Assembly (NCBI RefSeq): GCF_031769215.1
Contig: NW_026782437.1
Coordinates: 310,001 to 374,000, forward strand
DNA: 64,000 nt
Direction: 5' to 3'
From: Ylistrum balloti
Lineage: Eukaryota
The notes beneath the pieces are model-generated. The model had not been told where the DNA came from and searched no databases. It saw only the letters and a program-made list of their open reading frames with translations. Of this stretch, positions 23,948 to 57,604 are shown piece after piece (the stretch's first letter is position 1; each line of letters begins with the position of its first letter). Made by a program: the position numbers and the translations under genes.

Positions 23948-26900
23948 ATGCCTGGGGTGAAGCGGAAAGCTTCTACCACTCCTGGGGATAAGCTCCCAGC
24001 TAAACTAAAGAAGCAGTCCACCAGCGTAACCTTGGATCGGGCTATCCCGACCTCGACACAGAAAACATCGAAGATAAAGAAAGCTGCTCTGCCAAATATA
24101 AATGAAAGTCCAGATATCCCCAAAAAGATAGCTGGAGGAAAAAAAGAAAATAAGTCCATGCCTCCGTTACCAAGATTTCCTACTCTAGTGCCAACAAAAC
24201 CAGGTGGTACAACAGAGTCTGATTTTGTGTTCAATATTTCTCCAAGTTCTAGTCCCCAAAAAGATAATTTGTCAGAAAGTGGTATACCATCTAAGTCATC
24301 AAAGAGTGATGTACCTGAACTAAGAAAAGAAACCACAACATTAATTACAACAAAATCTTCAGATGATTGTCCTGGTAATAAAGCTTCGAACATAGAGAAG
24401 AGTGTGCTTAAGTTATCATCTGGTTCCTATGTTGGTCGAATCATGAACAAAGACATTGATGATCAGATGTTGCCTTCACTTGAATCCCTTGCTGTTTATG
24501 AACAGAAACAGAAAAGTAAGACGTCAGATGCCCCATTCACCTGGGACATGACAGACACTGATACTTCTCCAGTGCGCAAATCAGTTTATGATGTTAGTGC
24601 TGTTCTGAACATATTAGAGCAAGAAAATTCACCAACAAAATATAGTTTAGGTGGTAATACTAGTGACAATGAGAGCGATGCTCCCCCTGTGCTTCAGGCT
24701 GAGGTATATGATGAGACATCTTGTGAAAACTTTGATGAAGATGATGCTGTTCCAACTCTAACTTGTATGGGTACTCCATCCAAGTCCCCATCCAAGTCTC
24801 CCCGTAAAATGACCGGAGGACCAAGAGAAATTGTGTTTTCATTTGATACGACAGGGTCCATGTATAACTACATGGAGGAGGCTAGCTACAGGATGCGAGA
24901 ACTCATGAATCGTGTCCAAGAGGACATGCCTGGAATTCGTCTGGCCTTTGTTGCACATGGTGATTATTATGACTTGGCAAATGACCGATATCTCATAAAG
25001 TGGATAGACTTCGGTGCCAGTGTAGATGAGGTTGATACATTCTTTGAAAACCTTCCCATAACACATGGCGGTGATGCTGATGAATGTTATGAACTAGTGC
25101 TACGTAAGGTCCGAGAGTCCTTGTCCTGGACTGTGGGCAGTCAGCGCAGCCTTGTCATGATTGGAGATTCTGATCCACATGAACCAGGATACAAATTCAA
25201 CGACTTTGTCAATGATATTGACTGGAGGCAGGAGACAAAACTGCTCAATGAAATGGTATGGCAATGTTTTTTCTTCTGTATGAATCTCAGAAATATTGAA
25301 GGGACTGCAAAAGCTCATTCTTTAGATATGAAACCTGGAACATCACAATTTGATGATCCTACTCTTGAGTGGTTTGTGTTTATTCGGAAGCAGGGATCAC
25401 ATATTGTTCTATTTGTTTTTTAAACAAGACACTTTAAAGTTTCCCGAAATGCTTTGGATAATATAAAGATGCACTGGACCTCCAGTGTGTTGAGTAGCCA
25501 ACTGCTATTACAAGGAAATCCTTATCAAAATAAGCCAGTTAGCTGTTCATGGGGTGATAAACCCAGCAAACTAACTCAGAAGTGTAATCTATTTTAGTAA
25601 AATAATCACTTAAGAAGTAATATAACTATTTATTCGGTTGAACTAGATCAAATTAAAAATGTTTTTGTGGGTTTTTGATTTATGTAATTGACTATAAATT
25701 ATCTTGAACTATATCAGAATCTTTGAAACAAACAGATGTTGTTCATTTCATTGTAATAAACTTTAAATTTGATTTATACATATTGAAGAAGTAATTTTGA
25801 AGTAAATTCCGTGTTAAACAAACATCTTTTCTCTGAATACTTATATATTCCTGATAAACATTAATCATGGTCAAAAGATAGATTAAAACATTAGCATTTG
25901 ATGAGTAAAGTTACCATTACCCTAGATATTATCATTTACAGGAGAACTTCACCAGCATGACACCCTATTTAAAATTATAAGCTTGAAAAATTTTAAGTCA
26001 GTTCAGTTTTGTGGGATGGTTAATAATTGTTTTGATTTTACGAGACCTTTGCAGATTAACATCTGTTGTTGTTTACACAGGGAGTGAGGATCTATGCTCT
26101 ACAAGTTGGCTACACATCAAACTTCTACAAACAGATAGCACAGATGACAAGCGGAGCTCACTTGCGCATTGAGAACACTGACTTCACATATGACACCCTA
26201 ATGTCTATATGTCTAAGGGAAGGAGGACTTCGCCATCTCAAGGTATACCCAAGTTTAATTGTTAACTTTCTAATGGACATAATGTCTGAATGTGAAAATG
26301 GCATTTTCATTCCTTATTGGGATCTAAGTACTTTGTTTGTTTGAAACATTAGTTAAATATTTGTAAAAAAAATGGTAAATATAACTTAAATATATTTAAT
26401 TATTAATGGAATTGTCTTGTTATACTTTCCTCACATGGTGTTTATAATAATCCTAGAAGAGCTCCTGGTGACCTTGTTGCTAATATGTTTCATCTGTTGT
26501 CACCAGGCTGTCAACTGAAGTGCATAATGGATTTCAACCAAATTTTGTCTGAAACATCAACAGGAGTGGGCAATTAATTATTCTCTTAAGTGTTCAGAAA
26601 GTTGATTTTACCTCAAGGGATTTTGACAGTATTTTACTTTAAAACACTTCTCCTTCGTAATTTCTTGATATATTTCACCCAGATTTGGACTGAAACATTA
26701 CTATTTACTGTCAATGATATCAAAATATGCATGAAGTGATCCTGAGATTGTCCTTACCAAATCTCATTTTTCAGTAAAAATTCCAACATAACTCATCTCA
26801 AATAGATAGTCTAAACTACTACTCCTGTAATGTTTTGAGTTTCATTTGTGAAGGAAAGGAAGCAGGTGCTATGTTGTTATTTTTCAGCCTTGTCAAAACT

Positions 26901-29758
26901 TCGACATGGTAGCCACTTTGTAATATGATTTTGCAGTTGTTTTTCATGAACAAAGCCTACCATTCATGAGTTTCAGATACTTTCAAAACATTCAAGATTT
27001 GAATTCATCAGATATGTTATAATTAGACCACCATCAGCAAGTTTTGTGGTCTGTCTGTCCATCTGTCAATTGTCAGATGACTGTTGAGGGCCATAAGGGC
27101 TATGACTCTCTTGTTTCATATCCTATATGTTTAGATATATTTGAATAAGTATTGTGATTGGATTTCTCTTTCAAACTGGGAGATATATTTACCAACATCG
27201 CTTTTATTTCCTATATCAGAAATATTGTTCAAATCAGGTCTAGATTTGCCAGTAATGAATATAAAACTCATTTCAATTTTGATCTGTTACATGTGTTAGT
27301 TAAGAGAATGCTTCAAATTGATTCTAAATTCTAATCACAAAGTATTAAGGTTAACAAATTTACATGTAAATAATTTACATGGTTCTTTATTACAGGGCTA
27401 TGAACATGAGGTACGAACTGCTGCAAAGAAGTCTGGCAGCAATGGAGGGACACTTGACTTAGAATTGGAACGTCTGTTCAGTTCTCTGAAAAACATTGCT
27501 GACAACAAATCCCTCAAACAACGAGAGAGAGAGAACAAACTGAAAGCTCGGATTCTAGAAATGACAACAGATCCCAAAACATTGTCTGCTCCTAAGAGGT
27601 CCTCCGAAAATGAAGGCAACACTTCTGACCAGAAGAAACCAAAGGTATCATTTAAGTCCCAAACAAAAGTAACTTCAGATAAACCCAAGTTATCTGACAG
27701 TGTCAGTCCCAAGAAATTGACAAAGATCAAAGAGAAAGGCCCCGACACATCAAAAAAGAATGCATCGGTTGAAAATATGAAAAAGGTATCCAAAACTAAA
27801 ATGTCGGCTACCAAATCTGTGACACCCAAACCCAAGACAAAAATACTCAAGGAAAAGGCTGCGGAAAAGAAAGGAGCATTGAAGATCAAAGGTATCGAGA
27901 AGAAAAAAGGAGATGGAAAATTGAAGAAAACTACAAGTAATGACAAGACAAAGAGACCAGTTGGTAGACCTCGTAAAGTTGTTGAAGCTGTAAAAGCCAG
28001 AGGAAGACCCCCAAAGAAAGACGAAGCTAAGAAAAAGGTTGGAAAATCGCTTAAGAAGGTTGCCTTGAAATCTCCTGGACGACCCCCTAAAACATCACAA
28101 ACTCCCAAAAAGTCTGTTAAGAAAGCAGAAAAGACAAAGAAATCATCAGAAACTCCTAAAAAAGTTGGAAGGCCAAAAACGAAAATTGAAAAAGCTAGTT
28201 CTTCGGAAACTCCAAGAAAACGGGGAAGGCCAGTGAAAAACTTGGAAAAGAATAAATCTTCTGGGAAACCATCTAAGGTAAAAACATCCAAAACAGCTGG
28301 AAAAGCAAAGAAGAAAGTAGAAACTTCTTCAGCAATGAAGAAAAAGGAAGAAACATCTTTAAAATCCCCAAGCTCAGTTGTTCAAAGGATAGTGGCAGCT
28401 AAATTAAAGCGTTTAGGGAAAGGAGGCACTATCGCCAAAGTGAAGATAAGTAAAAAGTTAAAAACTGTGGTAAAGAAAAAAGACAACAAGTCTAAAATCA
28501 AGCCTAAAGTTGTTACAAAGGCAAAGTTGTCTGCAAAGTCTAAGAGCAAAGCTGGTGCAAAGAAAAAGCTGAATTCAACTAAGGACAGTACTAAACGTAA
28601 GCCAACGCCAGCAAAACTGAGCTTGAAAAAGAAAGAAGGTAGAGCGAAGATTGCAAAACTGAAATCTGTCAAAAAAGTTCAAGAAAAAAAGAAAGCTGTA
28701 AAAGGGTCATTGAAGGACAAGAAAAAAACTGTTAAAAAGGTAATGAAATCTACTAAACCTTTAAAGACAACTAAAAAGAATGTAACTAAAGGGAAACCAG
28801 GCAGACCACCAAGTGTTCAACAGAAGGAGAAAACAAAAACTTCTAAAAAATCTGCTAAAACAGAGACAAAGAAGGGGAAAACAATTCCAGTAAAGAAAAC
28901 CCCGAAGACTGACACCAAAAAAGTGAAGAGTGGCCCAGTGCAAAAGAAGCCTGTTAAGCCTAAATCTCCACAGGTGAGATTTTTTGAAATAGTATTGATA
29001 TATCAGCATCTTGGAATCGAGTATTTTAATATGTTACTTCTATTATCACAATCAGACATTTATTTAAAATTGTTGAAAGGGAGTTTTGAATTATGATTAT
29101 ATATTGGAATTAAAGTTAAGATATAGCCTATCATTAAAATTTATGTCAAACAAAAATGTCATTTCAAATTTATTCAGTATCTGTACATGTTTTAATTTGT
29201 TCTTGAAGTAATTAATTGTGTATAACAAAATTACTTAATTTGCAGAAGACTAAAAGCAGTAACACTGAGCACAGAGAAAACATCAGTGGATCAAAATTCA
29301 GTACTGGACCGCTTAGCAACGTGAAGTGGAGCCAATGGGCTCCAATAATCTCCTCCAAAGCAGATGGAGCTAACTGGTCAAAATCACGTAGCTGGTGCGG
29401 TGGTCATTCAAATGAGTCATTGTACAAAGGAGAGGGCAATACTCAAGCCCTGTATGAGGCAGCAGTGGTCCCGCCTAGCAGCAACAATAAATATGTTGTG
29501 ACTTATGTTGTCGGACAAGGTGTCCCAGCTGTCCAAGTATGGGACTGTTTTACTAATTCATATGTGCGACAACAGGTGCAGCGCATCATCAAAGCCAAGG
29601 GTGCGATCTTTGTTCGAAGGGGTGTAATTGCTGGTCGTGCGAAAGACAGTCTTATCAAAGCTGAGGAATACATCAAAGAGAATTTTGATTATGCTTGGCG
29701 TGGAAGTCGTCGTACCACAGAAGTCAGAAAGGAAGGATTTTTGGTATCCAAACCCTAA
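23948..29758 (+). CDS. vWA gene 1: nuclear-type vWA + Lys-rich AT-hook-like linker + C-terminal GIY-YIG-like (ET-type) domain protein, about 1186 aa
   Basis: Exons 23948-25255 (436 codons, donor ATG|GTATGG), 26081-26242 (54), 27396-28973 (526), 29246-29758 (170 + TAA); all phase 0, AG/GT. vWA motifs: EIVFSFDTTGSM, AHGDYYD, GGDADECYELVL, LVMIGD.PH. Six GRP motifs. C-terminal WSQW...ALYEAAV...YVVTY...FVRRG...FDYAW. Confidence 0.9.
26455..27116 (-). mobile_element. Non-autonomous interspersed repeat in intron of gene 1
   Basis: Minus strand starts aacaagagagtcatagcccttatggccctcaacagtcatctgac and contains tttggtaaggacaatctcaggatcacttcat, similar to the 8.6-kb and 35.8-kb repeat copies. Confidence 0.4.
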
Positions 29759-39469: not shown

Positions 39470-40060
39470 GATAAATCGGGAGGATAAGTGGGTATGTTGA
39501 ACAGGGAATGTAGATACGTATGTTGAATAAGGAGGGAGAGTAAGTATGTTGAATAGGGAGTGAAAAATGTATATATTAGATAGGGAGGATAAAGAGGTAT
39601 GATAAAAAGGTAAAGAGGCATGATAAATGGGGAGGTAAGTAGGTGTGAAGTATAGGGGCTGTAAATATGTATGGTGAATAGGGAGGGTAAAGAGGTATGA
39701 TGAATAGGGAAAGAGAAAAGGTATGGTGGATAGGCAGTTTAAAGAGGTATGATGAATAGGGAGGGTAAAGAGGTATGATGAATAGGGAGGGTAAAGAGGT
39801 ATGATGAATAGGCAGTTTAAAGAGGTATGATGAATAGGGAGGGTAAAGACATATGTTGAATGGGGAGGGTAAAGGGATATGATGAATAGGGAGGGTAAAG
39901 ACATATGTTGAATGGGGAGGGTAAAGAGGAATGTTGAATAGGGAGGGTAAAGAGGTATGATGAATAGGGAGGGGAAGGACATATGTTGAATGGGGAAGGT
40001 AAAGAAATATGTTGAATGGGGAGGGTAAAGAAATATGTTCAAGTGCATGGGTGGGTAAAT
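39470..40060 (+). repeat. Purine-rich satellite block upstream of copy A promoter
   Basis: Same unit as 36745-38185. Confidence 0.9.
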
Positions 40061-40561: not shown

Positions 40562-41703
40562 GTGAGTAATAACACTGAATTTGCTATCAGATTGACACTG
40601 TTACACCGTTTTATCTTAATGTAGTACGCATACTCACTTTTCTAACAATGTAAACAATAACATGTTTACACGATCTAAATTATAAATGTTAGACTACAGC
40701 CGGGTGATTGACAACAGCAATATACTTGTTGTTAGTTCATGTTATCTATATGAATATTTTCGCTACAGCGCTACGTCATTAAAGGTGATCCTTGGACCCA
40801 GAACACTCGCCAATTGGATATGCTAATTTTTGCTTAATGAATGAATCAGTAACCACAAACTTCGGGTCAATTTTAACCCTACAGATTTTTCAATTAATCT
40901 ATAAGCTTTACAATTTTTGGGAAATCTGAAATACATAATTATTTTACATCAGCGTGCCTGTCAAAATTCACAGTAGAAAATTATTTTCGAAAATTGATAA
41001 GTACACCGGTGTTAGAACTCTTTCTGTTTATTTGAATGTAATTTTCATCGACATGATTTAAAATGAATTATTGATTCTGTTTTTATATCCCATCACCATT
41101 CAATTATATGAACTAACTGTACAAGCTAACCAGTAATCACCATTATTTTTATCTCCATTTCTTCATAAGCTTCCAGAAGGTTTAGATTTACGCTAAGAGC
41201 AATTAGTAAAACAATAGACAAAGCTAAGTTAGATTTCGGTGTTTAAGTTTATTATTTCTTACAATGTAGATTTGAATTATATTAACCTGTTTTGTAGTTT
41301 GTAATGATGTCGATAATGATATGGTATTCTAGTATAATGTGTAATATCTGCGTAAACACTCATTGTGATACCTGCTGCAAGTATAACTGGGATGATGTTT
41401 ATAAATGGTTTTGTTGTCTATTGAGATAAAATTGTTTCCGGTTATAGGATTGCACTACAGTACTGTTTTATAGTTTCGAAATGTACCGCATTTATTTTTG
41501 AATTCAAATCTTAAAATCAATTACTTTTCACATTACACGTAAAATTAGGTCGGTGAGAAAAAGGTCACAGAAAAAAAAACCTGTTCATTGACATGAGATA
41601 TAATTTGATTGTTTGAAAACAATTAATCTGTTGCTCAAAACTGACAGTTAATAAAATGTTGATATTTAACATCTGTTAATGTCCTGATAATTATCTCTTT
41701 AAG

Positions 41704-44307
41704 ATGCCAGCTATCAAGAGAAAAAGTACAGAGGTCAGTATGGCAAAGAAACCAAGTCTTCGACGGGACAACACTCTGACTCTAGAATCATCAGACGACT
41801 CGTCCCCTCTTAGTTCCTCGAGGTCCGTGAGACGCAGTACCTCAAAATTATCCTCATCTGTCTCCACACTTAAACGGAAAGCGACGCTGGTATCCGAAGG
41901 ATCCGGAATCTATTCATCCGTAGTCGCTCTTAATTCTGGCTCCAGTGTCGGTAAAACAGCGAGTTTGAAATCAGCTTCCGTTGGAAAGGGTTGCGATGTC
42001 ATACCTGTTTCCCCTTCGCTTTCTAAAAAAGCAAGTGGAAGTAAAACATCAGCAGCAGTTGATACATTACGTAAGTCTGTTTCTGAGTTAAAAGATCTAA
42101 TGGAGACCACTTCATCAGTGAAGAGTTCCTTGTCGAAGAGAAAATCATCTCTTGTGAAAGAACCATCTCTGACGAAAACATCACTTTCCAAACGGAAGTC
42201 CAGTATCCCTGATGTGAATACCAGTAGCAATTCCACCACAACTCCACCACTACCACCCGGTGGTCTCCTAGAGATCGCCATTTCATTTGATACCACTGGA
42301 TCTATGTACGGCTGTCTAGAGGAAGTTCGTGGAAGAATCAAAGACATGGTTCAACGACTTCAGGCCGATATTCCAGGAATCAGAATAGCAATTATTGCAC
42401 ACGGAGACTATTGTGATGTGGATAATTACATTGTGAAATGGATTGATTTCGGGGCAACTGTTCCAGAGCTATGCGAGTTCGTGGAAACAGTTTCGCGCAC
42501 CTGCGGTGGAGATGCGGACGAATGTTACGAACTCGTGCTTCGAAGGGCAAGGGAGGTATTATCATGGACACCAGGAAGCCAACGCTCTCTAGTTGTAATA
42601 GGGGATTGTGCACCTCATGAAGTTGGGTATTCATATAACGGTTTTGTGAACGACATAGATTGGCGTGTGGAGGCTCAAGAACTAAACAAAATGGTAATTG
42701 TCCTTTAATAAATGATCAATGATATATAGCCTTTTGTTGTATACTTATATATGTAAATAAAGCATCATGCGTTAGTATTTTGTTAGTACAGTACTTCAGT
42801 TTGAACATTCTTTATCAAAAAAAATAATGGGTTTAGTTTTGAAGTTTGAATGTTTGTCCAGTAATAATAAGATAAAACTTTAATTTATTTCAGGGTGTCA
42901 AGATATACAGTGTTTGTGTCAACGCCATACCGCTACTTTTTTATAATGTGATAGCAAATAAGACAGGTGGAAAAACAATCCCTCTTGCTAGTTTCGGAAT
43001 TCTGTTTGACATTCTGATGTCTATTTGTTACAAGGAAGGAGGACCAGACTTGTTTGAGGTAGGCACATCATTGATCATCATTCACCATTGTTGACCAATT
43101 AATAGATTTTAGATAACCATTTTTAATTAAGCTGTTGATACCGTTTGAAAACCTACTGCATTGGCAATTCAGGTTAAGATATTTATGCTGCTAAAATAAA
43201 TAGTATTTGAGCTATATATTAATATGAAAAGAAGGTAATACTATCATAACTATTTTACAGGCTTATGAAGCAGAAGTGAGGGAAAGAAACAAACACAAGA
43301 CAATGGACACAGCGCTTGAGGGAATGTTTACCTCTCTCGGGGGTAAGAAAAGTAGCTTCGGATTAGCCCCAGCATCACACATAGGGACCGGACTGCCAGC
43401 ATTCAAACCATTGACTCTTCCAACGGGAACGGCTGGAATGTTTTCACTGGGAAAACCAACGACCCATAAGATAAAAACTGCCAAGAAAAATAAAACTACA
43501 AAGAAACAAACTAAAATTACAAAAAAGACAAAGGTAAGAATCTAAAAAATTGTCTTTACCCTAAATATAGATAAACCATAATGATTATATTTAGGGGTAC
43601 TTGATAAAAAAAAAACAGATAAAAAGAAAAAAAAATACGTAGCTTAAGAAAACTTCGGTTTGAAAAATCAGTGATTTCTATTATCTAAATAAGGCCCAGG
43701 GAAAAACTGGAATGGTGATTTTGAAATTGTTTTACAGGAAAGAAAAAGTAGAGGAAAGTCTGGAGGACGATTCAACAGGGAAAGTCTTACACACGCGAAA
43801 TTTACAAAAGGACCTCTGAAGCGACTGGTATGGTCAAAATGGATGTTGGGGATTTCCAAAACCCAGTTTGCGAAAGCTGACGGACATGACATCAGCTTCA
43901 CTCACCGCGATTGGTGTGACGCCTTTTGTAACAAAGGTATACTTACAGCGGACGATGTGAATGGCATTCCTGCAGTGTATGAGTTTGCTGTTCGTTTGTC
44001 TGGAAAGAAGAAACTGTACCCAGTGTTCTACAAGGTAACCACAGGAGTACCCAAGGGCAGTAATTGGTTAAACTATCTCCTCTCACAGAAAAGGGTTCGC
44101 AACGTCATCAAAGATGTGGTGAATACTCACGCTGACGTCATGGTGAGGAAAGGCCAGTTTAAAACGAACAGATCTACATTCATTCAGAAAGTGTCACAGT
44201 TGATGTTTAAAAAGTATGACTACGCATGGGTAGGACATAGAGACAGAAAGATGAAATTCCGGAATCTCAAGCGATGTGGAGTTCGGATTTCCAGCGATTC
44301 ATACTGA
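41704..44307 (+). CDS. vWA + GIY-YIG-like family copy A, intact, about 665 aa
   Basis: Exons 41704-42693 (330 codons; ATG directly after ttaag), 42894-43058 (55), 43261-43533 (91), 43738-44307 (189 + TGA); all phase 0 and at the same positions as gene 1. Motifs EIAISFDTTGSM, AHGDYCD, GGDADECYELVL, IGD.APH, WSKW, PAVYEFAV, YDYAW. AATAAA at 44341. Confidence 0.9.
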
Positions 44308-45411
44308 TCGTCATCCGTCAGCAAGGAGACAAATGGCAGCAATAAAACACCAGTTTGACGTTATTGTCATAGGTTTATATGCCTCCATATCCATTATGCT
44401 CTTGTTTTTAAAACTGAAGAGAAATTAACATCATGTATTGTGGTTTTCTGATATAAGAAGTTAATAGTTATTTTCTTTGACATTTATGCTTAATATATTT
44501 GTATCCTCCTTTTGAAACAAACACGCCACGTGCTAACTTTTCCGTACAATAATGGACATCACGTTTACACCTTTTACTTTACCAATTGAAATTTGAAGTG
44601 AATCCGTCAACGTTTATAAGTTTTGGACCCGGGACTACAAGATCGCTCCATCTATTATAATTTTTTATCAGAACGTTTAGTTTCTTTAATTTAGTTATTC
44701 AGCAGCCACTTGGCGATTAACTTTGATTTGGCTACAAGTTCAAATTTTGAACATTTGTCTGAATACATAAAGCCATTGTTACATGTCAGGTAAATATTAC
44801 AAAACATCGATTCCTGTTTTATGACATAAATGGTCTTTATTTATTTTCTTTTATTATTGTTATATATATATATATATATATATATTATGTATGTGTAAAG
44901 GATGGTAATGCAGACATATTGTGTTTTATAGTGTATTGTTTTATCTTAGTATAGAAATAAATGTTTTTTATTGTTCATGTAAAGTTAAGGTTTTATTCTA
45001 TTTTCTTTCAGATAATGATTTCCCAATGAAATAAGAAAGAAACTATTCGTTTTCAATTAAGTTTTTACTAACTTCTTGCTATCAAAAAGCTAATGTGAAC
45101 ATTTCTTGCGATACGAATATGTTTTCTACCACATCAATGATACATCAATCCTTTTCTGTTTAAACAATCTGGTCGTATACAAAAAAATTGGTAAATCAGC
45201 CACCGGGACATTTCCAATTATTTGGTGCCAGCTAATAGGTTTTCGCTCTTGTATCCTTACATCACTAAAATACATATTTGAACAACTTTAATTAAACGTT
45301 TCATTCTTCAATAAAAATGATAAAACAAGCTCTGTCCACTTGATAGAGGAGTCGAAGGCAGCACGCCTCCTTGTAATGGGTCTGTTTGGACTATTTAATC
45401 TACTGCGACTG

Positions 45412-45412
<1 letters not shown>

Positions 45413-45448
<36 letters not shown>

Positions 45449-45650
45449 CTACTACTGTTTACACACACAACTACTACTATTTACATACACAACTACTGCT
45501 GTTTACACACACAACTACTACTACTATTTACACACACAACTACTACTATTTACATACACAACTACTGTTTACACACACAACTACTACTATTTACACACAC
45601 AACTACTATTTACATACACAACTACTACTGTTTACACACACAACTTCTAC
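45413..45650. repeat. (CA)n plus (ACACAACTACTACTRTTT)n compound microsatellite
   Basis: Direct reading; duplicated at 52061-52300. Confidence 0.95.
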
Positions 45651-46299
45651 TGTCTAACGTGTTGAAAAACTGTGGTTTTGGTTTCTTACAATGAAGGCAA
45701 AACGTTTCCTGAAAAAATATCTGTCAAGGATGCAGAATTCGTGACAATCAGAATCCACACAAAATGATACATAATTTTTGAAAACAATAACAAGCACTGA
45801 CAGGAACATTTTAAGTTATATGCGAGTATGAAAAAATGCTATTTAAACATTGATAATTGGGTAAAAATACAACATAAAATCTAAAAAATATCTATCAAAG
45901 CTAAATTATTGAAACGTGTTTGAGATTCATGTTTTTCTCTCCATAAAAGTATTTTTTCAAATCATTTTCCAGGAAATATTTTTTGATTGATTTCATTCGA
46001 ATAGTGGCACTGTTCAGAATAAATTTCGGATGTATGAAAATTATCTAATTGATTAAATTATTGGGCTAGTGCAACTTATAATTTGATTTAGAATTCGACA
46101 TTTTTTCCCTATCAATTTTAATTTTCTTCTGTAGCCTATAAGTTTTTAAAGAATATGCCGAAGAGTCATAGAAGAATGAAACAGTCGTATAATGTAATTT
46201 CGTTCATCATTTAGCACATCTGCATCTAATTGTAAATTTGTATTGAAATGTGCTGGCTACTACTGTGTATATTGTACAATTGTGAGTACGTTTGTTAAA

Positions 46300-46830
46300 T
46301 CGGGAGGGTAAATGGGTATGTTGAACAGGGAATGTAAATACGTATGTTGAATAAGGAGGGAAAAGAAGTATGTTGAATAGGGAGTGAAAATGCATATATA
46401 AGATAGGGAGGATAACGAAGCATGATAAAAAGGTAAAGAGGCATGATAAATGGGGAGGTAAGTAGGTGTGATATATAGGGGCTGTAAATATGTATGACGG
46501 ATAGGGAGGATAAAGACATATGTTGAATAGGGAGGGTAAAGAAGTATGATAAATAGGGAAGGAGAAAAAGTATGGTGGATAGGCAGTTTAAAGAGGTATG
46601 ATGAATAGGGAGGGTAATGAGGTATGATGAATAGGGAGGGTATAGAGGTATGATGAATAGGGAGGGTAAAGAGGTATGTTGAATAGGGAGGGTAAAGAGA
46701 TATGTTGAATGGGGAGGGTAAAGAGGTATGTTGAATAGGGAGGGTAAAGACATATGTTTAATAGGGAGGGTAAAGACACATATTGAATGGGGAGGGTAAA
46801 GACATATGTTGAAGTGGGTGGGTAAATGGG
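46300..46830 (+). repeat. Purine-rich satellite upstream of copy B promoter
   Basis: Same unit as upstream of copy A. Confidence 0.9.
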
Positions 46831-47099
46831 GATGTCGAATGTGATTTTTCTATTTGTAGCTGTTACTGTCTGTCGATATGTAATGAGAGAGTAATAGGTG
46901 TGGTTTTATGTTTGTACATTTTGTATTAGCGAGTATATGTGCTCTATTGATTACGTTGCCTGTCAGGAAGTTCTTCCCACTGAAAACTGTTTAGTATACC
47001 TGCCTTTAACAGCGTACATACACACAACAATATTGATATGATTTAAATATCGTCATTTACTGCCCGGTGTCTGAATGCGCAAGGCTACACACATGGTAT

Positions 47100-47289
47100 T
47101 GCACAATCGGAAGTTATATTTATATAAACGAAAATGCTGACACAGGTATCTAGTTAAATCGGGGTGCAAAACACGAATTAACTTGTCCTGGATTCCTGTT
47201 CAATGCGCATGCGGTAGGTTTATTATTAAGGTATTTCCCCGTCCTGCGTCGGTATATATATAAATTATACAGATCTTTTAAACATCAAG
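47100..47289 (+). promoter_or_regulatory. Eroded promoter and exon 1 of copy B
   Basis: Aligns to 40330-40561. Keeps TGCGCATGCG, TATA and AAG|GTGAGT (47289/47290) but lacks the CCAAT- and initiator-containing segments; the ETS site reads TCGGAAGT. Confidence 0.6.
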
Positions 47290-48343
47290 GTGAGTAATAA
47301 CACTGAATTTGCTATCAGATTGACACTGTTACACGGTTTTATCTTAATGTAGTACGCATACTCACTTTCCTAACAGTGTAAACAATAACATGTTTAAACG
47401 ATCTAAATTATAAATGTTAGACTACAGCCGGGTGATTGACAACAGCAATATACTTGTTAGTTCATGTTATCTATATGAATATTTTCGCTACGTCATTAAA
47501 GGTGATCCTTGGCCCAAGAGCACTCGCCAATTGGATTTGCTAATTTTTGTTAGTGAATGAATCAGTAACCACAAACTTCGGGTCAATTTTAACCCTACAG
47601 ATTTTTCAATTAATCTATAAGCTTTACAATTTTTGGGAAATCTGAAATACATAATTATTTTACATCAGCGTGCCTGTCAAAATTCACAGTAGAAAATTAT
47701 TTTCGAAAATTGATAAGTACACTGGTGTTGGGACTAACTGTCCACGCAAAGCAGTAATCACCATTATTTTTATCTCCCCTTCTTCATATGCTTCCAGAAG
47801 GTTTAGATTTACGCTAAGATCAATTAGTAAAACAATAGTCAAAGCTAAGTTAGATTTCGGTGTTTAAGTTTATTATTTCTTACAATGTAGATATGAATTC
47901 TATTAAGCTGTTTTGTAGTTTTTAATGATGTCGAAAATGATATGATATTCTGGTATAATGTGTAATATCTGCGTAAACACTCATTGTGATACCTGCTGCA
48001 AGTATAACTGGGATGATGTTTATAAATGGTTTTGTTGTCTATTGAGATAAAATTGTTTCCGGTTATAGGATTGCACTACAGTACCGTTTTATAGTTTCGA
48101 AATGTACCGCATTTATTTTTGAATTCAAATCTTAAAATCAATTACTTTTCACCTTACAATCAACCACGTGAGCTTCAGTTCAAAATTAGGTCGGTGAGAA
48201 AAAGGTCACAGAAAAAAAACCTGTTCATTTACATGAGATATGAATTTATTATTTGAAAACAATTAATCTATTGCTCAAAACTGACAGTTAATAAAATTTT
48301 GATATTTAACATCTCTCAATATCCTAATAATTATCTCTTTAAG

Positions 48344-50957
48344 ATGCCACCTATAAAGAGAAAAAGTACAGAGGTCAGTATGGCAAAGAAACCAAGTCTT
48401 CGACGGGACAACACTCTGACTCTAGAATCATCAGACGAGTCGTCCCCTCTCAGTTCATCAAGGTCCGCGAGGCGCAGTACCTCAAAATTATCCTCATCTG
48501 TCTCCTCACTTAAACGGAAAGCGACGCTGGTATCCGAAGGATCCGGAATCTATTCATCCGTAGTCGCTCTTAATTCTGGCTCCAGTGTCGGTAAAACAGC
48601 GAGTTTGAAATCAGCTTCCCTTGGAAAGGATTGCGATGTCATACAGGTTTCCCCTTCGCTTTCTAAAAAAGCAAGTGGAAGTAAAACATCAGCAGCAGTT
48701 GATACATTACGTAAGTCTGTTTCTGAGTTAAAAGATCTAATGGAGACCACTTCATCAGTGAAGAGTTCCTTGTCGAAGAGGAAATCATCTCTCGTGAAAG
48801 AACCATCTCTGACGAAAACATCACTTTCCAAACGGAAGTCCAGTATCCCTGATGTGAATACCAGCAGCAATTCCACCACAACTCCACAACTCCACCACTA
48901 CCACCCGGTGGTCTCCTAGAGATCGCCATTTCATTTGATACCACCGGATCTATGTACGGCTGTCTAGAGGAAGTTCGTGGAAGAATCAAAGACATGGTTC
49001 AACGACTTCAGGCCGATATTCCAGGAATCAGAATAGCAATTATTGCACACGGAGACTATTGTGATGTGCATAATTACATTGTGAAATGGATTGATTTCGG
49101 GGCAACTGTTCCAGAGCTATGCGAGTTCGTGGAAACAGTTTCGCGCACCTGCGGTGGAGATGCGGACGAATGTTACGAACTCGTGCTTCGAAGGGCAAGA
49201 GAGGTGTTATCATGGACACCAGGAAGCCAACGCTCTCTAGTTGTAATAGGGGATTGTGCACCTCATGAAGTTGGGTATTCATATAACGGTTTTGTGAACG
49301 ACATAGATTGGCGTGTGGAGGCTCAAGAACTAAACAAAATGGTAATTGTCCTTTAATAAATGATCAATGATATATAGCCTTTTGTTGTATACTTATATAT
49401 GTAAATAAAGCATCATGCTTTAGTATGTTGTTAATACAGTACTTCAGTTTGAACATTCTTTATCAAAAAAATTAATGGGTTTAGTTTTGAAGTTTGAATG
49501 TTTGTCCAGTAATAATAAGATAAAACTTTAATTTATTTCAGGGTGTCAAGATATACAGTGTTTGTGTCAACGCCATACCGCTACTTTTTTATAATGTGAT
49601 AGCAAATAAGACAGGTGGAAAAACAATCCCTCTTGCTAGTTTCGGAATTCTGTTTGACATTCTGATGTCTATTTGTTACAAGGAAGGAGGACCAGACTTG
49701 TTTGAGGTAGGCACATCATTGATCATCATTCACCATTGTTGACCAATTAATAGATTTTAGATAACCATTTTTAATTAAGCTGTTGATACCGTTTGAAAAC
49801 CTACTGCATTGGCAATTCAGGTTAAGATATTTATGCTGCTAAAATAAATAGTATTTGAGCTATATATTAATATGAAAAGAAGGTAATACTATCATAACTA
49901 TTTTACAGGCTTATGAAGCAGAAGTGAGGGAAAGAAACAAACACAAGACAATGGACACAGCGCTTGAGGGAATGTTTACCTCTCTCGGGGGTAAGAAAAG
50001 TAGCTTCGGATTAGCCCCAGCATCACACATAGGGACCGGACTGCCAGCATTCAAACCATTGACTCTTCCAACGGGAACGGCTGGAATGTTTTCACTGGGA
50101 AAAACAACGACCCATAAGATAAAAACTGCTAAGAAAAATAAAACTACAAAGAAACAAACTAAAACTACAAAAAAGACAAAGGTAAGAATCTAAAAATTGT
50201 CTTTACCCTAAATATAGATAAATCATAATGATTATATTTAGGGGTACTTGATAAAAAAAAAAAAAAGATAAAAAGAACAAAAAAATACGTAGCTTAAGAA
50301 AACTTCGGTTTGAAATATCAGTGATTTCTATTATCTAAATAAGGCCCAGGGAAAAACTGGAATGGTGATTTTGAAATTGTTTTACAGGAAAGAAAAAGTA
50401 GAGGAAAGTCTGGAGGACGATTCAACAGGGAAAGTCTTACACACGCGAAATTTACAAAAGGACCTCTGAAGCGACTGGTATGGTCAAAATGGATGTTGGG
50501 GATTTCCAAAACCCAGTTTGCGAAAGCTGACGGACATGACATCAGCTTCACTCACCGCGATTGGTGTGACGCCTTTTGTAACAAAGGTATACTTACAGCG
50601 GACGATGTGAATGGCATTCCTGCAGTGTATGAGTTTGCTGTTCGTTTGTCTGGAAAGAAGAAACTGTACCCAGTGTTCTACAAGGTAACCACAGGAGTAC
50701 CCAAGGGCAGTAATTGGTTAAACTATCTCCTCTCACAGAAAAGGGTTCGCAACGTCATCAAAGATGTGGTGAATACTCACGCTGACGTCATGGTGAGGAA
50801 AGGCCAGTTTAAAACGAACAGATCTACATTCATTCAGAAAGTGTCACAGTTGATGTTTAAAAAGTATGACTACGCATGGGTAGGACATAGAGACAGAAAG
50901 ATGAAATTCCGGAATCTCAAGCGATGTGGAGTTCGGATTTCCAGCGATTCATACTGA
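48344..50957 (+). pseudogene. vWA + GIY-YIG-like family copy B, frameshifted chimera
   Basis: Exons 48344-49341 (998 nt = 990 + 8), 49542-49706, 49909-50181, 50388-50957. The duplication acaactcc (48878-48893) shifts the frame to TAG at 48917-48919. All splice sites are intact. Confidence 0.85.
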
Positions 50958-52059
50958 TCGTCATCCGTCAGCAAGGAGACAAATGGCAGCAATAAAACAC
51001 CAGTTTGACGTTATTGTCATAGGTTTATATGCCTCCATATCCATTATGCTCTTGTTTTTAAAACTGAAGAGAAATTAACATCATGTATTGTGGTTTTCTG
51101 ATATAAGAAGTTAATAGTTATTTTCTTTGACATTTATGCTTAATATATTTGTATCCTCCTTTTGAAACAAACACGCCACGTGCTAACTTTTCCGTACAAT
51201 AATGGACATCACGTTTACACCTTTTACTTTACCAATTGAAATTTGAAGTGAATCCGTCAACGTTTATAAGTTTTGGACCCGGGACTACAAGATCGCTCCA
51301 TCTATTATAATTTTTTATCAGAACGTTTAGTTTCTTTAATTTAGTTATTCAGCAGCCACTTGGCGATTAACTTTGATTTGGCTACAAGTTCAAATTTTGA
51401 ACATTTGTCTGAATACATAAAGCCATTGTTACATGTCAGGTAAATATTACAAAACATCGATTCCTGTTTTATGACATAAATGGTCTTTATTTATTTTCTT
51501 TTATTATTGTTATATATATATATATATATATATTATGTATGTGTAAAGGATGGTAATGCAGACATATTGTGTTTTATAGTGTATTGTTTTATCTTAGTAT
51601 AGAAATAAATGTTTTTTATTGTTCATGTAAAGTTCAGGTTTTATTCTATTTTCTTTCAGATAATGATTTCCCAATGAAATAAGAAAGAAACTATTCGTTT
51701 TCAATTAAGTTTTTACTAACTTCTTGCTATCAAAAAGCTAATGTGAACATTTCTTGCGATACGAATATGTTTTCTACCACATCAATGATACATCAATCCT
51801 TTTCTGTTTAAACAATCTGGTCGTATACAAAAAAATTGGTAAATCAGCCACCGGGACATTTCCAATTATTTGGTGCCAGCTAATAGGTTTTCGCTCTTGT
51901 ATCCTTACATCACTAAAATACATATTTGAACAACTTTAATTAAACGTTTCATTCTTCAATAAAAATGATAAAACAAGCTCTGTCCACTTGATAGAGGAGT
52001 CGAAGGCAGCACGCCTCCTTGTAATGGGTCTGTTTGGACTATTTAATCTACTGCGACTG

Positions 52060-52060
<1 letters not shown>

Positions 52061-52096
<36 letters not shown>

Positions 52097-52300
52097 CTAC
52101 TACTGTTTACACACACAACTACTACTATTTACATACACAACTACTGCTGTTTACACACACAACTACTACTACTATTTACACACACAACTACTACTATTTA
52201 CATACACAACTACTGTTTACACACACAACTACTACTATTTACACACACAACTACTATTTACATACACAACTACTACTGTTTACACACACAACTTCTACTG
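52061..52300. repeat. Compound (CA)n microsatellite, second copy
   Basis: Duplicate of 45413-45650. Confidence 0.95.
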
Positions 52301-52944
52301 TCTAACGTGTTGAAAAACTGTGGTTTTGGTTTCTTACAATGAAGGCAAAACGTTTCCTGAAAAATATCTGTCAAGGATGCAGAATTCGTGACAATCAGAA
52401 TCCACACAAAATGATACATAATTTTTGAAAACAATAACAAGCACTGACAGGAACATTTTAAGTTATATGCGAGTATGAAAAAATGCTATTTAAACATTGA
52501 TAATTGGGTAAAAATACAACATAAAATCTAAAAAATATCTATCAAAGCTAAATTATTGAAACGTGTTTGAGATTCATGTTTTTCTCTCCATAAAAGTATT
52601 TTTTCAAATCATTTTCCAGGAAATATTTTTTGATTGATTTCATTCGAATAGTGGCACTGTTCAGAATAAATTTCGGATGTATGAAAATTATCTAATTGAT
52701 TAAATTATTGGGCTAGTGCAACTTATAATTTGATTTAGAATTCGACATTTTTTCCCTATCAATTTTAATTTTCTTCTGTAGCCTATAAGTTTTTAAAGAA
52801 TATGCCGAAGAGTCATAGAAGAATGAAACAGTCGTATAATGTAATTTCGTTCATCATTTAGCACATCTGCATCTAATTGTAAATTTGTATTGAAATGTGC
52901 TGGCTACTACTGTGTATATTGTACAATTGTGAGTACGTTTGTTA

Positions 52945-53480
52945 AATCGGGAGGGTAAATGGGTATGTTGAACAGGGAATGTAAATACGTATGTTGAATA
53001 AGGAGGGAAAAGAAGTATGTTGAATAGGGAGTGAAAATGCATATATAAGATAGGGAGGATAACGAAGCATGATAAAAAGGTAAAGAGGCATGATAAATGG
53101 GGAGGTAAGTAGGTGTGATATATAGGGGCTGTAAATATGTATGACGGATAGGGAGGATAAAGACATATGTTGAATAGGGAGGGTAAAGAAGTATGATAAA
53201 TAGGGAAGGAGAAAAAGTATGGTGGATAGGCAGTTTAAAGAGGTATGATGAATAGGGAGGGTAATGAGGTATGATGAATAGGGAGGGTATAGAGGTATGA
53301 TGAATAGGGAGGGTAAAGAGGTATGTTGAATAGGGAGGGTAAAGAGATATGTTGAATGGGGAGGGTAAAGAGGTATGTTGAATAGGGAGGGTAAAGACAT
53401 ATGTTTAATAGGGAGGGTAAAGACACATATTGAATGGGGAGGGTAAAGACATATGTTGAAGTGGGTGGGTAAATGGGGAT
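52945..53480 (+). repeat. Purine-rich satellite upstream of copy C promoter
   Basis: Duplicate of 46300-46830. Confidence 0.9.
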
Positions 53481-53747
53481 GTCGAATGTGATTTTTCTAT
53501 TTGTAGCTGTTACTGTCTGTCGATATGTAATGAGAGAGTAATAGGTGTGGTTTTATGTTTGTACATTTTGTATTAGCGAGTATATGTGTTCTATTGATTA
53601 TGTTGCCTGTCAGGAAGTTCTTCCCACTGAAAACTGTTTAGTATACCTGCCTTTAACAGCGTACATACACACAACAATATTGATATGATTTAAATATCGT
53701 CATTTACTGCCCGGTGTCTGAATGCGCAAGGCTACACACATGGTATT

Positions 53748-53936
53748 GCACAATCGGAAGTTATATTTATATAAACGAAAATGCTGACACAGGTATCTAG
53801 TTAAATCGGGGTGCAAAACACGAATTAACTTGTCCTGGATTCCTGTTCAATGCGCATGCGGTAGGTTTATTATTAAGGTATTTCCCCGTCCTGCGTCGGT
53901 ATATATATAAATTATACAGATCTTTTAAACATCAAG
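53748..53936 (+). promoter_or_regulatory. Eroded promoter and exon 1 of copy C
   Basis: Essentially identical to the copy B promoter; donor at 53936/53937. Confidence 0.6.
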
Positions 53937-54990
53937 GTGAGTAATAACACTGAATTTGCTATCAGATTGACACTGTTACACGGTTTTATCTTAATGTAGT
54001 ACGCATACTCACTTTCCTAACAGTGTAAACAATAACATGTTTAAACGATCTAAATTATAAATGTTAGACTACAGCCGGGTGATTGACAACAGCAATATAC
54101 TTGTTAGTTCATGTTATCTATATGAATATTTTCGCTACGTCATTAAAGGTGATCCTTGGCCCAAGAGCACTCGCCAATTGGATTTGCTAATTTTTGTTAG
54201 TGAATGAATCAGTAACCACAAACTTCGGGTCAATTTTAACCCTACAGATTTTTCAATTAATCTATAAGCTTTACAATTTTTGGGAAATCTGAAATACATA
54301 ATTATTTTACATCAGCGTGCCTGTCAAAATTCACAGTAGAAAATTATTTTCGAAAATTGATAAGTACACTGGTGTTGGGACTAACTGTCCACGCAAAGCA
54401 GTAATCACCATTATTTTTATCTCCCCTTCTTCATATGCTTCCAGAAGGTTTAGATTTACGCTAAGATCAATTAGTAAAACAATAGTCAAAGCTAAGTTAG
54501 ATTTCGGTGTTTAAGTTTATTATTTCTTACAATGTAGATATGAATTCTATTAAGCTGTTTTGTAGTTTTTAATGATGTCGAAAATGATATGATATTCTGG
54601 TATAATGTGTAATATCTGCGTAAACACTCATTGTGATACCTGCTGCAAGTATAACTGGGATGATGTTTATAAATGGTTTTGTTGTCTATTGAGATAAAAT
54701 TGTTTCCGGTTATAGGATTGCACTACAGTACCGTTTTATAGTTTCGAAATGTACCGCATTTATTTTTGAATTCAAATCTTAAAATCAATTACTTTTCACC
54801 TTACAATCAACCACGTGAGCTTCAGTTCAAAATTAGGTCGGTGAGAAAAAGGTCACAGAAAAAAAACCTGTTCATTTACATGAGATATGAATTTATTATT
54901 TGAAAACAATTAATCTATTGCTCAAAACTGACAGTTAATAAAATTTTGATATTTAACATCTGTTAATGTCCTGATAATTATCTCTTTAAG

Positions 54991-57604
54991 ATGCCAGCTA
55001 TCAAGAGAAAAAGTACAGAGGTCAGTATGGCAAAGAAACCAAGTCTTCGACGGGACAACACTCTGACACTAGAATCATCAGACGACTCGTCCCCTCTCAG
55101 TTCATCAAGGTCCGCGAGGCGCAGTACCTCAAAATTATCCTCATCTGTCTCCACACTTAAACGGAAAGCGACGCTGGTATCCGAAGGATCCGGAATCTAT
55201 TCATCCGTAGTCGCTCTTAATTCTGGCTCCAGTGTCGGTAAAACAGCGAGTTTGAAATCAGCTTCCCTTGGAAAGGATTGCGATGTCATACAGGTTTCCC
55301 CTTCGCTTTCTAAAAAAGCAAGTGGAAGTAAAACATCAGCAGCAGTTGATACATTACGTAAGTCTGTTTCTGAGTTAAAAGATCTAATGGAGACCACTTC
55401 ATCAGTGAAGAGTTCCTTGTCGAAGAGGAAATCATCTCTCGTGAAAGAACCATCTCTGACGAAAACATCACTTTCCAAACGGAAGTCCAGTATCCCTGAT
55501 GTGAATACCAGCAGCAATTCCACCACAACTCCACAACTCCACCACTACCACCCGGTGGTCTCCTAGAGATCGCCATTTCATTTGATACCACCGGATCTAT
55601 GTACGGCTGTCTAGAGGAAGTTCGTGGAAGAATCAAAGACATGGTTCAACGACTTCAGGCCGATATTCCAGGAATCAGAATAGCAATTATTGCACACGGA
55701 GACTATTATGATGTGCATAATTACATTGTGAAATGGATTGATTTCGGGGCAACTGTTCCAGAGCTATGCGAGTTCGTAGGAACAGTTTCGCGCACCAACG
55801 GTGGAGATTTGGATGAATGTTACGAACTCGTGCTTCGAAGGGCAAGGGAAGTGTTATCATGGACACCAGGAAGCCAACGCTCTCTAGTTGTAATAGGGGA
55901 TGGTGCACCTCATGAAGTTGGGTATTCATATCAGGGCTTTGTAAACGACATAGATTGGCGTGTGGAGGCTCAAGAACTAAACAAAATGGTAATTGTCCTT
56001 TAATAAATGATCAATGATATATAGCCTTTTGTTGTATACTTATATATGTAAATAAAGCATCATGCTTTAGTATGTTGTTAGTACAGTACTTCAGTTTGAA
56101 CATTCTTTATCAAAAAAATTAATGGGTTTAGTTTTGAAGAGCAATCAATGGCTAGTGATATTCTAAATTAAGATATTTAACATATCACTTTTTATTTCAG
56201 GGTGTCAAGATATACAGTGTTTTTGTTGGCGGCTTGCCCATGCATTTTTATAAAGAGATAGCAAATGTGACAGGTGGAAGGCTAATTTCTCTTGCTGGCT
56301 TTGGAGTTCTGTTTGACATTCTGATGTCTATCTGTTACAAGGAAGGTGGATCTGATCTGTTTGAGGTAGGCACATCACTAACACTTTTGTTATAAACATA
56401 TTTACCATTACTGACTAATATACAGAAAATTGTCAAAGTTTTTTCTTTTTTACATTCGCCATTTTCCATAAGGCTCCGGGTCATATCTCGTTAGAAGTTT
56501 ATGATATCTAAATATTGCTATGTATTGTTATTACAAGAAGGTAATACTATCATAACTATTTTACAGGCTTATGAAGCAGAAGTGAGGGAGAGAAACAAAC
56601 ACAAGACAATGGCCACAGCGCTCGAGGGAATGTTTACCTCTCTCGGGAGTAAGAAAAGTAGCTTCGGATTAGCCACAGCATCACACATAGGGACCGGACC
56701 TCCATTGTTCACACCATTTACTTATCCAACGGGAATGGCCGGAATGCTTCCATTGGGAAAACTAATGATCCCCAAGATAAAAACGGCAAAAAAGCAAACT
56801 AAAGCTACAAAAAAGACAAAGGTAAGAATCTAAAAATTGTCGCTACACTAAATGTAAATAAACCATAATGACTATATTTAGGGATACTTGATAAAACAAA
56901 AACAATATGTAGCTTGAGAAAACTTCGGTTTGAAAAACAGTTAGAAAATGTGTTATTTAACAGTTTATGAACGATTTCTATTATCCAAAAAAGGCTCAGA
57001 GAAAGAGTGGAATAATGATTTTAAAACTGTTTTACAGAAAACAAAAAGCAGAAGGTCAGGAGGACGATTTAACAGGGAAAGTCTTACTGACATGGAATTT
57101 ATAAAAGGACCTCTGAAGCGACTGGTGTGGTCAAATTGGATGTTGGGGATTTCCAAAACCCAGTTTGCGAAGGCTGACGGACATGGTATCAACTTGACTC
57201 ACCGCGATTGGTGTGACGCCTTTTGTAACCATGGTATACTTACAGCGGACGATGTGAACGGCGTTCCTGCAGTGTATGAGTTTGCTGTTCGTTTGTCTGG
57301 AAAGAAGAAACTGTACCCAGTGTTCTACAAGGTAACCACAAGAGTACCCAAGGGCAGTCATTGGTTCAACTATCTCCTCTCACAGAAAAAGGTTCGCAAC
57401 GTCATCAAAGATGTGGTGAATACTCACGCTGACGTCATGGTAAGGAAAGGCCAGTTTAAAACGAACAGATCTACATTCATTCAGAAAGTGTCACAGCTGA
57501 TGTTTAACAAGTATGACTACGCATGGGTATGACAAAGAGACAGAAAGATGAAATTCCGGAATCTCAAGCGATGTGGAGTTCGGATTTCCGGCGATTCATA
57601 TTGA
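54991..57604 (+). pseudogene. vWA + GIY-YIG-like family copy C, divergent 3' half, frameshift plus nonsense codon
   Basis: Exons 54991-55988 (998 nt, same 8-bp duplication), 56201-56365, 56567-56821 (85 codons), 57038-57604. GGA>TGA at 57530-57532 follows DYAWV; the ancestral stop is at 57602-57604. Confidence 0.85.

Follow-up and report, generated by a model that had tools for sequence, protein, structure and literature searches.

In the 64,000-nucleotide stretch of the Ylistrum balloti genome analysed here (contig NW_026782437.1; hereafter the window), positions 23948-57604 carry four paralogous genes on the plus strand, G1 to G4. Their products are laid out as a vWA domain, a basic linker and a C-terminal domain that has the GIY-YIG fold, apparently in the form known from the plant EFFECTOR OF TRANSCRIPTION (ET) proteins. 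In the interpretation that we consider fairly probable (about 0.6), the four genes belong to a mollusc-wide family that encodes intracellular, DNA-directed proteins with three modules, G1 and G2 being functional members of this family and G3 and G4 decayed ones. The strongly conserved vWA domain, with its metal ion-dependent adhesion site (MIDAS), would most likely dock on a conserved partner protein. The linker, rich in Lys and Arg and poor in acidic residues, would bind polyanions, presumably DNA, and in G1 it has grown into a series of AT hooks that would be specific to the minor groove of AT-rich DNA. The third module, a GIY-YIG fold of the PF19239 type, would engage DNA and may nick it. 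As G1 and G2 belong to the long-form branch of the family, in which the N-terminus resembles a nuclear localisation signal (NLS), both proteins are most likely nuclear and would act on DNA or chromatin.

Gene models and protein layout

The gene models were rebuilt from open reading frames (ORFs) and splice sites, and each of the four genes has four exons, as follows.

G1 exon 1: 23948..25255, plus strand; bipartite NLS-like start (MPGVKRK...KLKK), Ser/Thr/Pro-rich region of about 290 residues, first two thirds of the vWA domain from about 24815
G1 exon 2: 26081..26242, plus strand; middle of the vWA domain
G1 exon 3: 27396..28973, plus strand; final vWA helix (GYEHEVR) followed by some 500 residues of basic linker (35% Lys + Arg) with six GRP AT-hook cores
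G1 exon 4: 29246..29758, plus strand; predicted ET-type GIY-YIG-fold domain, with every family-invariant residue kept
G2 exon 1: 41704..42693, plus strand; NLS-like start, Ser-rich region, vWA domain beginning at about 42259
G2 exon 2: 42894..43058, plus strand; middle of the vWA domain
G2 exon 3: 43261..43533, plus strand; final vWA helix and short basic linker
G2 exon 4: 43738..44307, plus strand; predicted ET-type GIY-YIG-fold domain, of which 43801-44304 encodes the modelled sequence
G3: 48344..50957, plus strand; exons 48344-49341, 49542-49706, 49909-50181 and 50388-50957; hybrid copy with the frame of exon 1 broken
G4: 54991..57604, plus strand; exons 54991-55988, 56201-56365, 56567-56821 and 57038-57604; the most diverged copy of the array

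G1 encodes 1186 amino acids and G2 665, both intact. Every gene has three introns, all of them GT-AG, in phase 0 and at homologous positions: past ...LN[EK]M, past the vWA strand that ends in ...L[KE], and immediately ahead of the last exon. An initial annotation of the window, made from its letters alone, had proposed four genes with common intron positions and phases, and the rebuilt models bear this out. The layout that it described is also common to G1-G4: a basic N-terminus, a MIDAS vWA domain, a basic linker and a C-terminal domain of 165 residues. The motifs that it quoted were recovered across the copies (FDTTGSM, HGDY.D, GGDADECYELVL, IGD..PH, W-S-x-W, [AV][LV]YE.AV, VR[RK]G and [FY]DYAW), those of the vWA domain reading FDTTGSM, HGDYYD, GGDADECYELVL and IGDSDPHE in G1. 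Neither a hydrophobic N-terminus nor a transmembrane-like segment outside the vWA core was found in the predicted window proteins, whose N-termini are hydrophilic and basic, in agreement with the earlier statement that signal peptides and transmembrane segments are absent.

The C-terminal domains of G1 and G2 are just 29% identical, and therefore these genes are true divergent paralogues and not merely recent copies. Over its full length, the spliced G1 protein can be aligned with Pecten maximus XP_033745470 (70.5% identity over 1185 residues), and the same holds for G2 and a relative of 726 residues (67%). Moreover, two transcript-like Logan contigs from other species encode the vWA domain, the linker and the C-terminal domain in one unbroken ORF with short flanks.

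The three modules

A profile of the C-terminal domain, built from three distinct copies and searched against 1.84 billion cluster representatives, retrieved 151 proteins at E<=0.001. An alignment of 80 sequences (A2), about 25% identical to G2, was taken from these matches. The sole Pfam family matched by A2 was PF19239 (GIY_YIG_domain), with 24 of the 80 members at E<=0.01 and a best E of 6e-8, and two full-length relatives, P0042 (26.7 bits) and P0104 (26.2 bits), pass the gathering score of this family, which is 21.4 bits. The AlphaFold2 model of the G2 domain computed from A2 reached a mean predicted local distance difference test score (pLDDT) of 91.7 and a predicted template modelling score (pTM) of 0.87, as opposed to a pLDDT of just 40 with an alignment of three sequences. 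Numbering residues on the protein encoded by window positions 43801-44304, the model contains strands 58-65 and 72-80, helices 89-93 and 97-108, strand 112-120 and helix 125-138. This order (beta-beta-alpha-alpha-beta-alpha), a three-stranded sheet with flanking helices, is that of the GIY-YIG core.

Structure comparisons agree with this model. A structural aligner run on 48,161 PDB chains without pre-filter placed only GIY-YIG nucleases at ranks 1-7: T4 EndoII (Z 7.4), the UvrC N-terminal domain (5.2), I-TevI (5.2), PD-T4-3 (5.1), the AtGRXS16 N-terminal domain (4.5), Eco29kI (4.0) and Hpy188I (4.0); the next match had a Z of 3.1. Among the AlphaFold models of Swiss-Prot, the two top matches were Arabidopsis ET3 and ET2 (probabilities 1.00 and 0.99), and they span model residues 10-157, thus including the W-S-x-W beta extension. 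The AlphaFold Database clusters appeared in the order mollusc vWA proteins, then an entry 'LOC106159000' together with a 'GIY-YIG domain-containing protein' (from their accession numbers, we take the former to be brachiopod and the latter coral), then plant ET2-like proteins and prokaryotic GIY-YIG domain proteins. In the ESM Atlas, a cluster of mollusc vWA proteins and one of plant PF19239 proteins (template modelling score, TM, 0.61) took the first two places. Three viral proteins likewise match the domain. Profile and sequence searches of the PDB with the C-terminal domain returned chance ribosomal matches only, and hhalign of A2 against T4 EndoII and I-TevI gave no signal. Taken together, the Pfam search of the relatives, the model and the structure searches support a GIY-YIG fold whose nearest characterised relatives are the plant ET proteins, as the initial annotation had supposed.

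Three residues, E61, R116 and Y141, are invariant across A2. Y60, W11, W14, W143 and R154 are conserved in more than 90% of the sequences and S12, R117, D140 and A142 in more than 80%. The Tyr of the GIY strand is Y60 (74 of 80), and strand 2 has Tyr or Phe at positions 76-77, with G82 coming next (57 of 80).

The vWA domain is much more strongly conserved. Its MIDAS residues, D17-x-T19-x-S21, T87 and D122 in P0042 numbering (the Thr and Asp loops being assigned from alignment position and not from structure), are invariant in 29 sequences that include amphioxus, as are many further acidic and His positions, and the MIDAS residues are present in G1, G2 and G4. The vWA domain is spread over three exons, which is why pieces of the window covering exon 1 alone scored below threshold for Pfam vWA (E 0.011-0.09). 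Colinear relatives whose vWA domains are 53-94% identical to those of G1 and G2 exceed the 23.8-bit cut-off (PF00092 / PF25106), namely P0128 (34.1), P0130 (35.2), P0146 (32.7) and P0042 (30.8). Between G1 and its Pecten orthologue, identity is 94% in the vWA domain, 75% in the C-terminal domain and 56% in the linker; the G2 vWA domain is 55-68% identical to gastropod, bivalve or amphioxus proteins, and the C-terminal domain falls from 75% between orthologues to about 25% across the family. The nearest Atlas clusters and named relatives are of the VWA_4 type and come from bacteria and fungi, from giant-virus RING proteins and from protist alpha-kinases, and a sequence search of solved structures gave no match, even with a profile. 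Judged from the alignments, this region is a vWA superfamily member with a complete MIDAS.

The N-terminal motif MPG[VI]KRKAS...K[LI]xK[QR] is kept in the long forms of bivalves and gastropods and fits a putative bipartite NLS. The linker contains 20-39% Lys + Arg and less than 10% Asp + Glu in nearly all of about 95 relatives. That of G1 has the six AT-hook cores already mentioned, as opposed to three in the Pecten orthologue, and Pfam AT_hook matched it with E 0.015 and 15.6 bits, against a gathering cut-off of 17.4. In G2-G4 the linker is short, with 26% Lys + Arg and without AT hooks. The Lys-rich linker attributed to all four genes is thus basic throughout the family, but strongly Lys-rich and provided with AT hooks in G1 only.

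This part of G1 evolves fast even within the species. In the independent DNA run X1, G1 has no frame-breaking variant, and the linker exon shows 13 single-base differences within 27640-28361, seven nonsynonymous and six synonymous. Exon 1, which encodes most of the vWA domain, has one coding change, and exon 4, which encodes the C-terminal domain, has two; all three are synonymous.

Distribution of the family and decay of the tandem copies

A search with the G2 vWA domain retrieved at least 1,389 proteins in the 184-585-residue band alone. Those with a named source are molluscan except for a few Branchiostoma proteins, and their annotation reads 'uncharacterized protein' or 'VWFA domain-containing protein'. 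The C-terminal domain recurs (E 1e-17 to 1e-55) in 77 of the 120 best vWA homologues. These 77 are molluscan wherever named and comprise essentially all of the 'short forms' of 433-523 residues, in which the vWA domain starts at about residue 15. Among the matches found, all named holders of the C-terminal domain are molluscs, and the C-terminal region of P0104 used as query retrieved Haliotis paralogues only. Some family members are automatically annotated with both Pfam domains, and one scallop paralogue bears the inherited name 'Ariadne-like RING finger protein R811'. Gene identifiers are adjacent in runs on one Haliotis rubra contig, and in Mercenaria and Tegillarca single contigs hold several paralogues, which points to tandem clusters in other molluscs.

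The initial annotation did not recognise this architecture from any characterised animal protein. Indeed, no paper describing a vWA plus GIY-YIG architecture was found among open-access papers and preprints, and the members are uncharacterised; on the other hand, the arrangement is the standard layout of a large mollusc family in the databases. It is a new, uncharacterised combination of known domain types, widespread in molluscs and not peculiar to this locus.

Other combinations of these domains were observed. In P0155, P0182 (Gigantopelta LOC121369129/30), P0220 and P0203, two of which are adjacent genes, an ET-type domain is N-terminal; the 200-400 residues behind this domain have no Pfam match, and a vWA domain is absent. 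The Branchiostoma proteins P0069, P0076 and P0090 are about 60% identical to the mollusc vWA domain and do not have the GIY-YIG-fold domain. They carry instead an unrelated N-terminal region of about 160 residues, with weak SAP/HeH-like language-model features (0.52-0.57) that serve as a lead only. The different partner region of the amphioxus proteins suggests that the vWA domain acts as a conserved adaptor whose partner domains can be exchanged.

G2, G3 and G4 lie in a tandem array in which the following features were located.

Tandem array: 41000..57650, no strand assigned; units of about 6.65 kb holding G2, G3 and G4, ending near 57.6 kb
8-bp tandem duplication (CCACAACT) in G3 exon 1: 48876..48883, plus strand; shifts the frame about ten codons ahead of the vWA domain, followed by a stop
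8-bp tandem duplication (CCACAACT) in G4 exon 1: 55523..55530, plus strand; lesion identical to that of G3, with the frame shift about ten codons ahead of the vWA domain
Premature TGA in G4 exon 4: 57530..57532, plus strand; directly past YDYAWV, with loss of the last 24 residues, including a conserved Arg and the terminal hairpin

Because of the duplications and of the TGA in G4, two of the four genes are pseudogenes as assembled. Unit 3 is 98-100% identical to unit 4 over its first (5') 1.5 kb and 98-100% identical to unit 2 over the remaining 3' part; accordingly, the 5' part of the G3 gene closely resembles G4 in sequence and its 3' part is identical to G2. The middle unit thus appears to be a hybrid of the two units beside it, as would be produced by an unequal crossover between units 4 and 2 or else by an assembly artefact. 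Between G2 and G4 the synonymous divergence (dS) is 0.11 and the ratio of nonsynonymous to synonymous divergence (dN/dS) is 0.45. Two pseudogenes, a hybrid unit and the tandem clusters of other molluscs fit the birth-and-death evolution proposed earlier for these genes by comparison with defence or germline genes.

Repeats accompany the genes. A G-rich 26-bp minisatellite (unit similar to GGTATGATGAATAGGGAGGGTAAAGA, with strong GC skew) occurs at 36796-40042, 46288-46840 and 52935-53487; it fills the spacer between G1 and G2, recurs downstream of G2 and G3 within the 6.65-kb units, and may have promoted unequal crossover. A 22-bp microsatellite-like array of the ACACACACAACTACTACTGTTT type is found at 45439-45653 and 52087-52301, copied along with the tandem unit, and gives rise to spurious His/Thr-rich ORFs. 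Upstream of G1, two long, well-preserved minisatellites occupy 12563-13752 and 15446-17302, the first with a 71-bp unit (16.6 copies, 95% identity) and the second with a unit of 56/168 bp (about 11-33 copies); the 71-bp minisatellite accounts for a local anomaly in GC content and skew. On either side of the array, at 20040-20861 (minus strand), 59414-59773 (minus strand) and 63012-63410 (plus strand), there are ORF fragments that resemble parts of a retrotransposon reverse transcriptase or endonuclease.

Alternative explanations and known systems

Several results weigh against the interpretation of G1 and G2 as functional members of a nuclear, DNA-directed family. The match of G2 to PF19239 has 13.2 bits and E 0.077, under the gathering score, and G1 gave no match in the Pfam scan of window pieces, so that at the level of Pfam the assignment stood for the relatives and fell short for the window genes themselves. 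Foldseek against the PDB returned nothing significant, GIY-YIG enzymes having the top TM-scores, and the TM-scores to the ET models are 0.47-0.48, just below 0.5, at 14-16% identity. The short-form relatives do not have the NLS-like N-terminus, and hence a nuclear role may not be family-wide. X1, the sole run holding the locus, is DNA, since its contigs cross the introns at even depth.

The possible active site adds to these points. In canonical GIY-YIG enzymes there is a catalytic Arg on the first helix, a metal-binding Glu after strand 3 and a structural Asn. As hhalign gave no signal with EndoII or I-TevI, the corresponding columns were placed by motif spacing against the T4 EndoII and I-TevI sequences and not by residue-level superposition. 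In this mapping, the expected Arg columns (84-101, in the helix after strand 2) have Arg in at most 27 of 80 sequences and the expected Glu columns (helix after strand 3) have Glu in at most 24 of 80. An Asn past W143 is present in 13 of 80. In the helix after strand 3, G1 has Glu residues and G2 has no acidic residue at all. The invariant Glu and Arg could form a structural salt bridge between adjacent strands. Conservation alone is thus compatible either with a rewired site, in which two Tyr, a Glu and Arg residues are strictly kept, or with a structural Glu-Arg pair in a domain that would only bind.

It is therefore worth considering that the nuclease fold of the C-terminal domain is catalytically dead and retained only as a module for binding DNA or protein, the proteins being non-enzymatic chromatin adaptors or transcriptional regulators. 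This reading, which is that of the initial annotation, differs from the interpretation that we favour on catalysis alone, and we regard it as a real possibility, although short of an even chance. The unconserved Arg and Glu columns, the scarcity of the Asn after the conserved Trp, the missing acidic residue in G2-type sequences and the failure of hhalign to match EndoII or I-TevI would all be expected of such a module. However, an invariant Glu, Arg and Tyr together with a near-invariant Tyr, Arg, Asp and Arg exceed what is usually retained for purely structural reasons. Moreover, as far as the account in PMC6585611 goes, the related domain of plant ET2 is reported to be capable of nicking and to substitute functionally for the GIY-YIG domain of UvrC (Ivanov et al. 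2008, cited therein), which argues for activity in the ET subtype.

The genes could also encode effectors of innate immunity or genome defence, with a vWA domain that senses, or is recruited by, a conserved host or parasite factor, a nuclease that attacks foreign or transposon DNA, and an arms race that drives the turnover. The size of the family (at least 1,389 vWA homologues within a single length band, many paralogues in each species, and adjacent identifiers in Haliotis, Mercenaria and Tegillarca) would fit such a role, and so would the two pseudogenes and unequal-crossover hybrid of the window, the much faster divergence of the C-terminal domain relative to the vWA domain, and the recurrence of the VWA_4 subtype in bacteria, giant viruses and protists, where it is joined to varied partner domains. 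Nevertheless, none of the PADLOC models matched. The dN/dS of 0.45 gives no sign of positive selection, and one gene of that pair is a pseudogene. Both G1 and G2 have one-to-one counterparts in Pecten with conserved domains, which resembles housekeeping conservation. We thus hold a dedicated defence role to be unlikely, though far from negligible.

Two further explanations can be largely set aside. Since invertebrate genomes contain many GIY-YIG endonucleases that belong to Penelope-like elements (PMC8557442) and fragments of retroelement ORFs flank the array, the genes might be part of a mobile element with such an endonuclease, or recently domesticated from one. This is disfavoured because PF01541, the Penelope GIY-YIG type, was matched by none of the 80 domain members, which matched PF19239 only, because three phase-0 introns are conserved among paralogues that are 29-53% identical, and because colinear orthologues exist in another scallop genus. 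Furthermore, no reverse transcriptase is linked to the genes and the copies are in tandem and not dispersed. A mobile-element origin is thus very improbable, and the Penelope-type candidate was rejected. vWA proteins are familiar constituents of the molluscan shell matrix, and most mollusc vWA proteins in the literature are secreted matrix or shell proteins. The N-termini found here are hydrophilic and basic, no signal peptide or transmembrane segment was detected, the vWA domain appears to be of the intracellular VWA_4 type, and its partner domains are of kinds that would act on DNA. A secreted matrix role was rejected on the absence of a signal peptide, and we give it hardly any credence.

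Returning to the intracellular, three-module family, its task could be either genome defence or surveillance, as would suit a large, tandem family with turnover, or a housekeeping function on chromatin, as would suit one-to-one scallop orthologues and purifying selection. On a more speculative note, which we consider doubtful, molluscs and perhaps other lophotrochozoans might have a large undescribed class of nuclear DNA-nicking proteins. In these, a MIDAS vWA domain would couple an ET-type nickase to a conserved cellular partner, and AT-hook or basic linkers would set the DNA target. The catalytic site would be rewired, with Tyr-Glu on strand 1, Arg-Arg on strand 3 and Asp-Tyr-x-Trp, and such an animal counterpart of plant ET could serve genome defence or the patterning of DNA methylation and repair.

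GIY-YIG domains of the ET type have been regarded as peculiar to plants, with ties to DNA methylation and repair (PMC6585611). Here, such a domain appears as the constant C-terminal module, always behind a highly conserved MIDAS vWA domain, of a very large molluscan family, which offers an experimentally tractable animal setting in which to study the role of this GIY-YIG subtype, its possible alternative active site and the presumed vWA partner. Several hundred bivalve and gastropod entries named 'uncharacterized protein' can now be seen as one coherent, probably DNA-directed family, and this matters for reading immune and stress transcriptomes of aquaculture species.

Among known systems, the plant ET proteins (ET1/ET2/ET3, PF19239) are the closest to the scallop genes. 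The subtype of the predicted GIY-YIG fold is the same, N-terminal beta extension included, and the PF19239 match of the relatives runs through strand 3, the helix and the DYAW region. ET proteins are nuclear and DNA-associated, and their genes have been described as plant-specific (PMC6585611). In plants the domain lies in the N-terminal half and is followed by Cys-rich, zinc-binding ET repeats, whereas in the scallop it is C-terminal, behind the MIDAS vWA domain and the basic linker. No Cys-rich ET repeats were found, and no Pfam match outside the vWA, AT-hook and PF19239 regions, in the window proteins and their relatives; the total number of Cys is seven in the 1186 residues of G1 and 12 in G2. 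The scallop proteins are thus not members of the ET family and have the domain type alone in common with it.

With the canonical GIY-YIG nucleases (T4 endonuclease II, the UvrC N-terminal domain, I-TevI, Eco29kI and Hpy188I), the scallop domain shares the core fold, and it has GIY-like and YIG-like strands with the conserved Tyr as well as a Trp that precedes the site of the conserved Asn, as it does in EndoII (PPWN). It differs from them in its unconserved Arg and Glu columns, in place of which it has an invariant Glu beside the GIY Tyr, the Arg-Arg of strand 3 and Asp-Tyr-x-Trp, and no sequence-level similarity to them was found in the PDB searches or by hhalign against EndoII and I-TevI. 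The G1 linker recalls AT-hook proteins of the HMGA type in its six G-R-P cores with basic flanks, two of them canonical R-G-R-P. Unlike HMGA, the hooks of G1 are placed inside a 500-residue Lys-rich linker of a multidomain protein, and they are absent from G2-G4 and from most relatives. Finally, relatives of the scallop proteins match both Pfam VWA and VWA_4 (PF25106), the intracellular type found in protist alpha-kinase/vWA proteins and in giant-virus RING-vWA proteins; in those systems the partner of the vWA domain is a kinase or a RING domain, and in the scallop it is a GIY-YIG fold.

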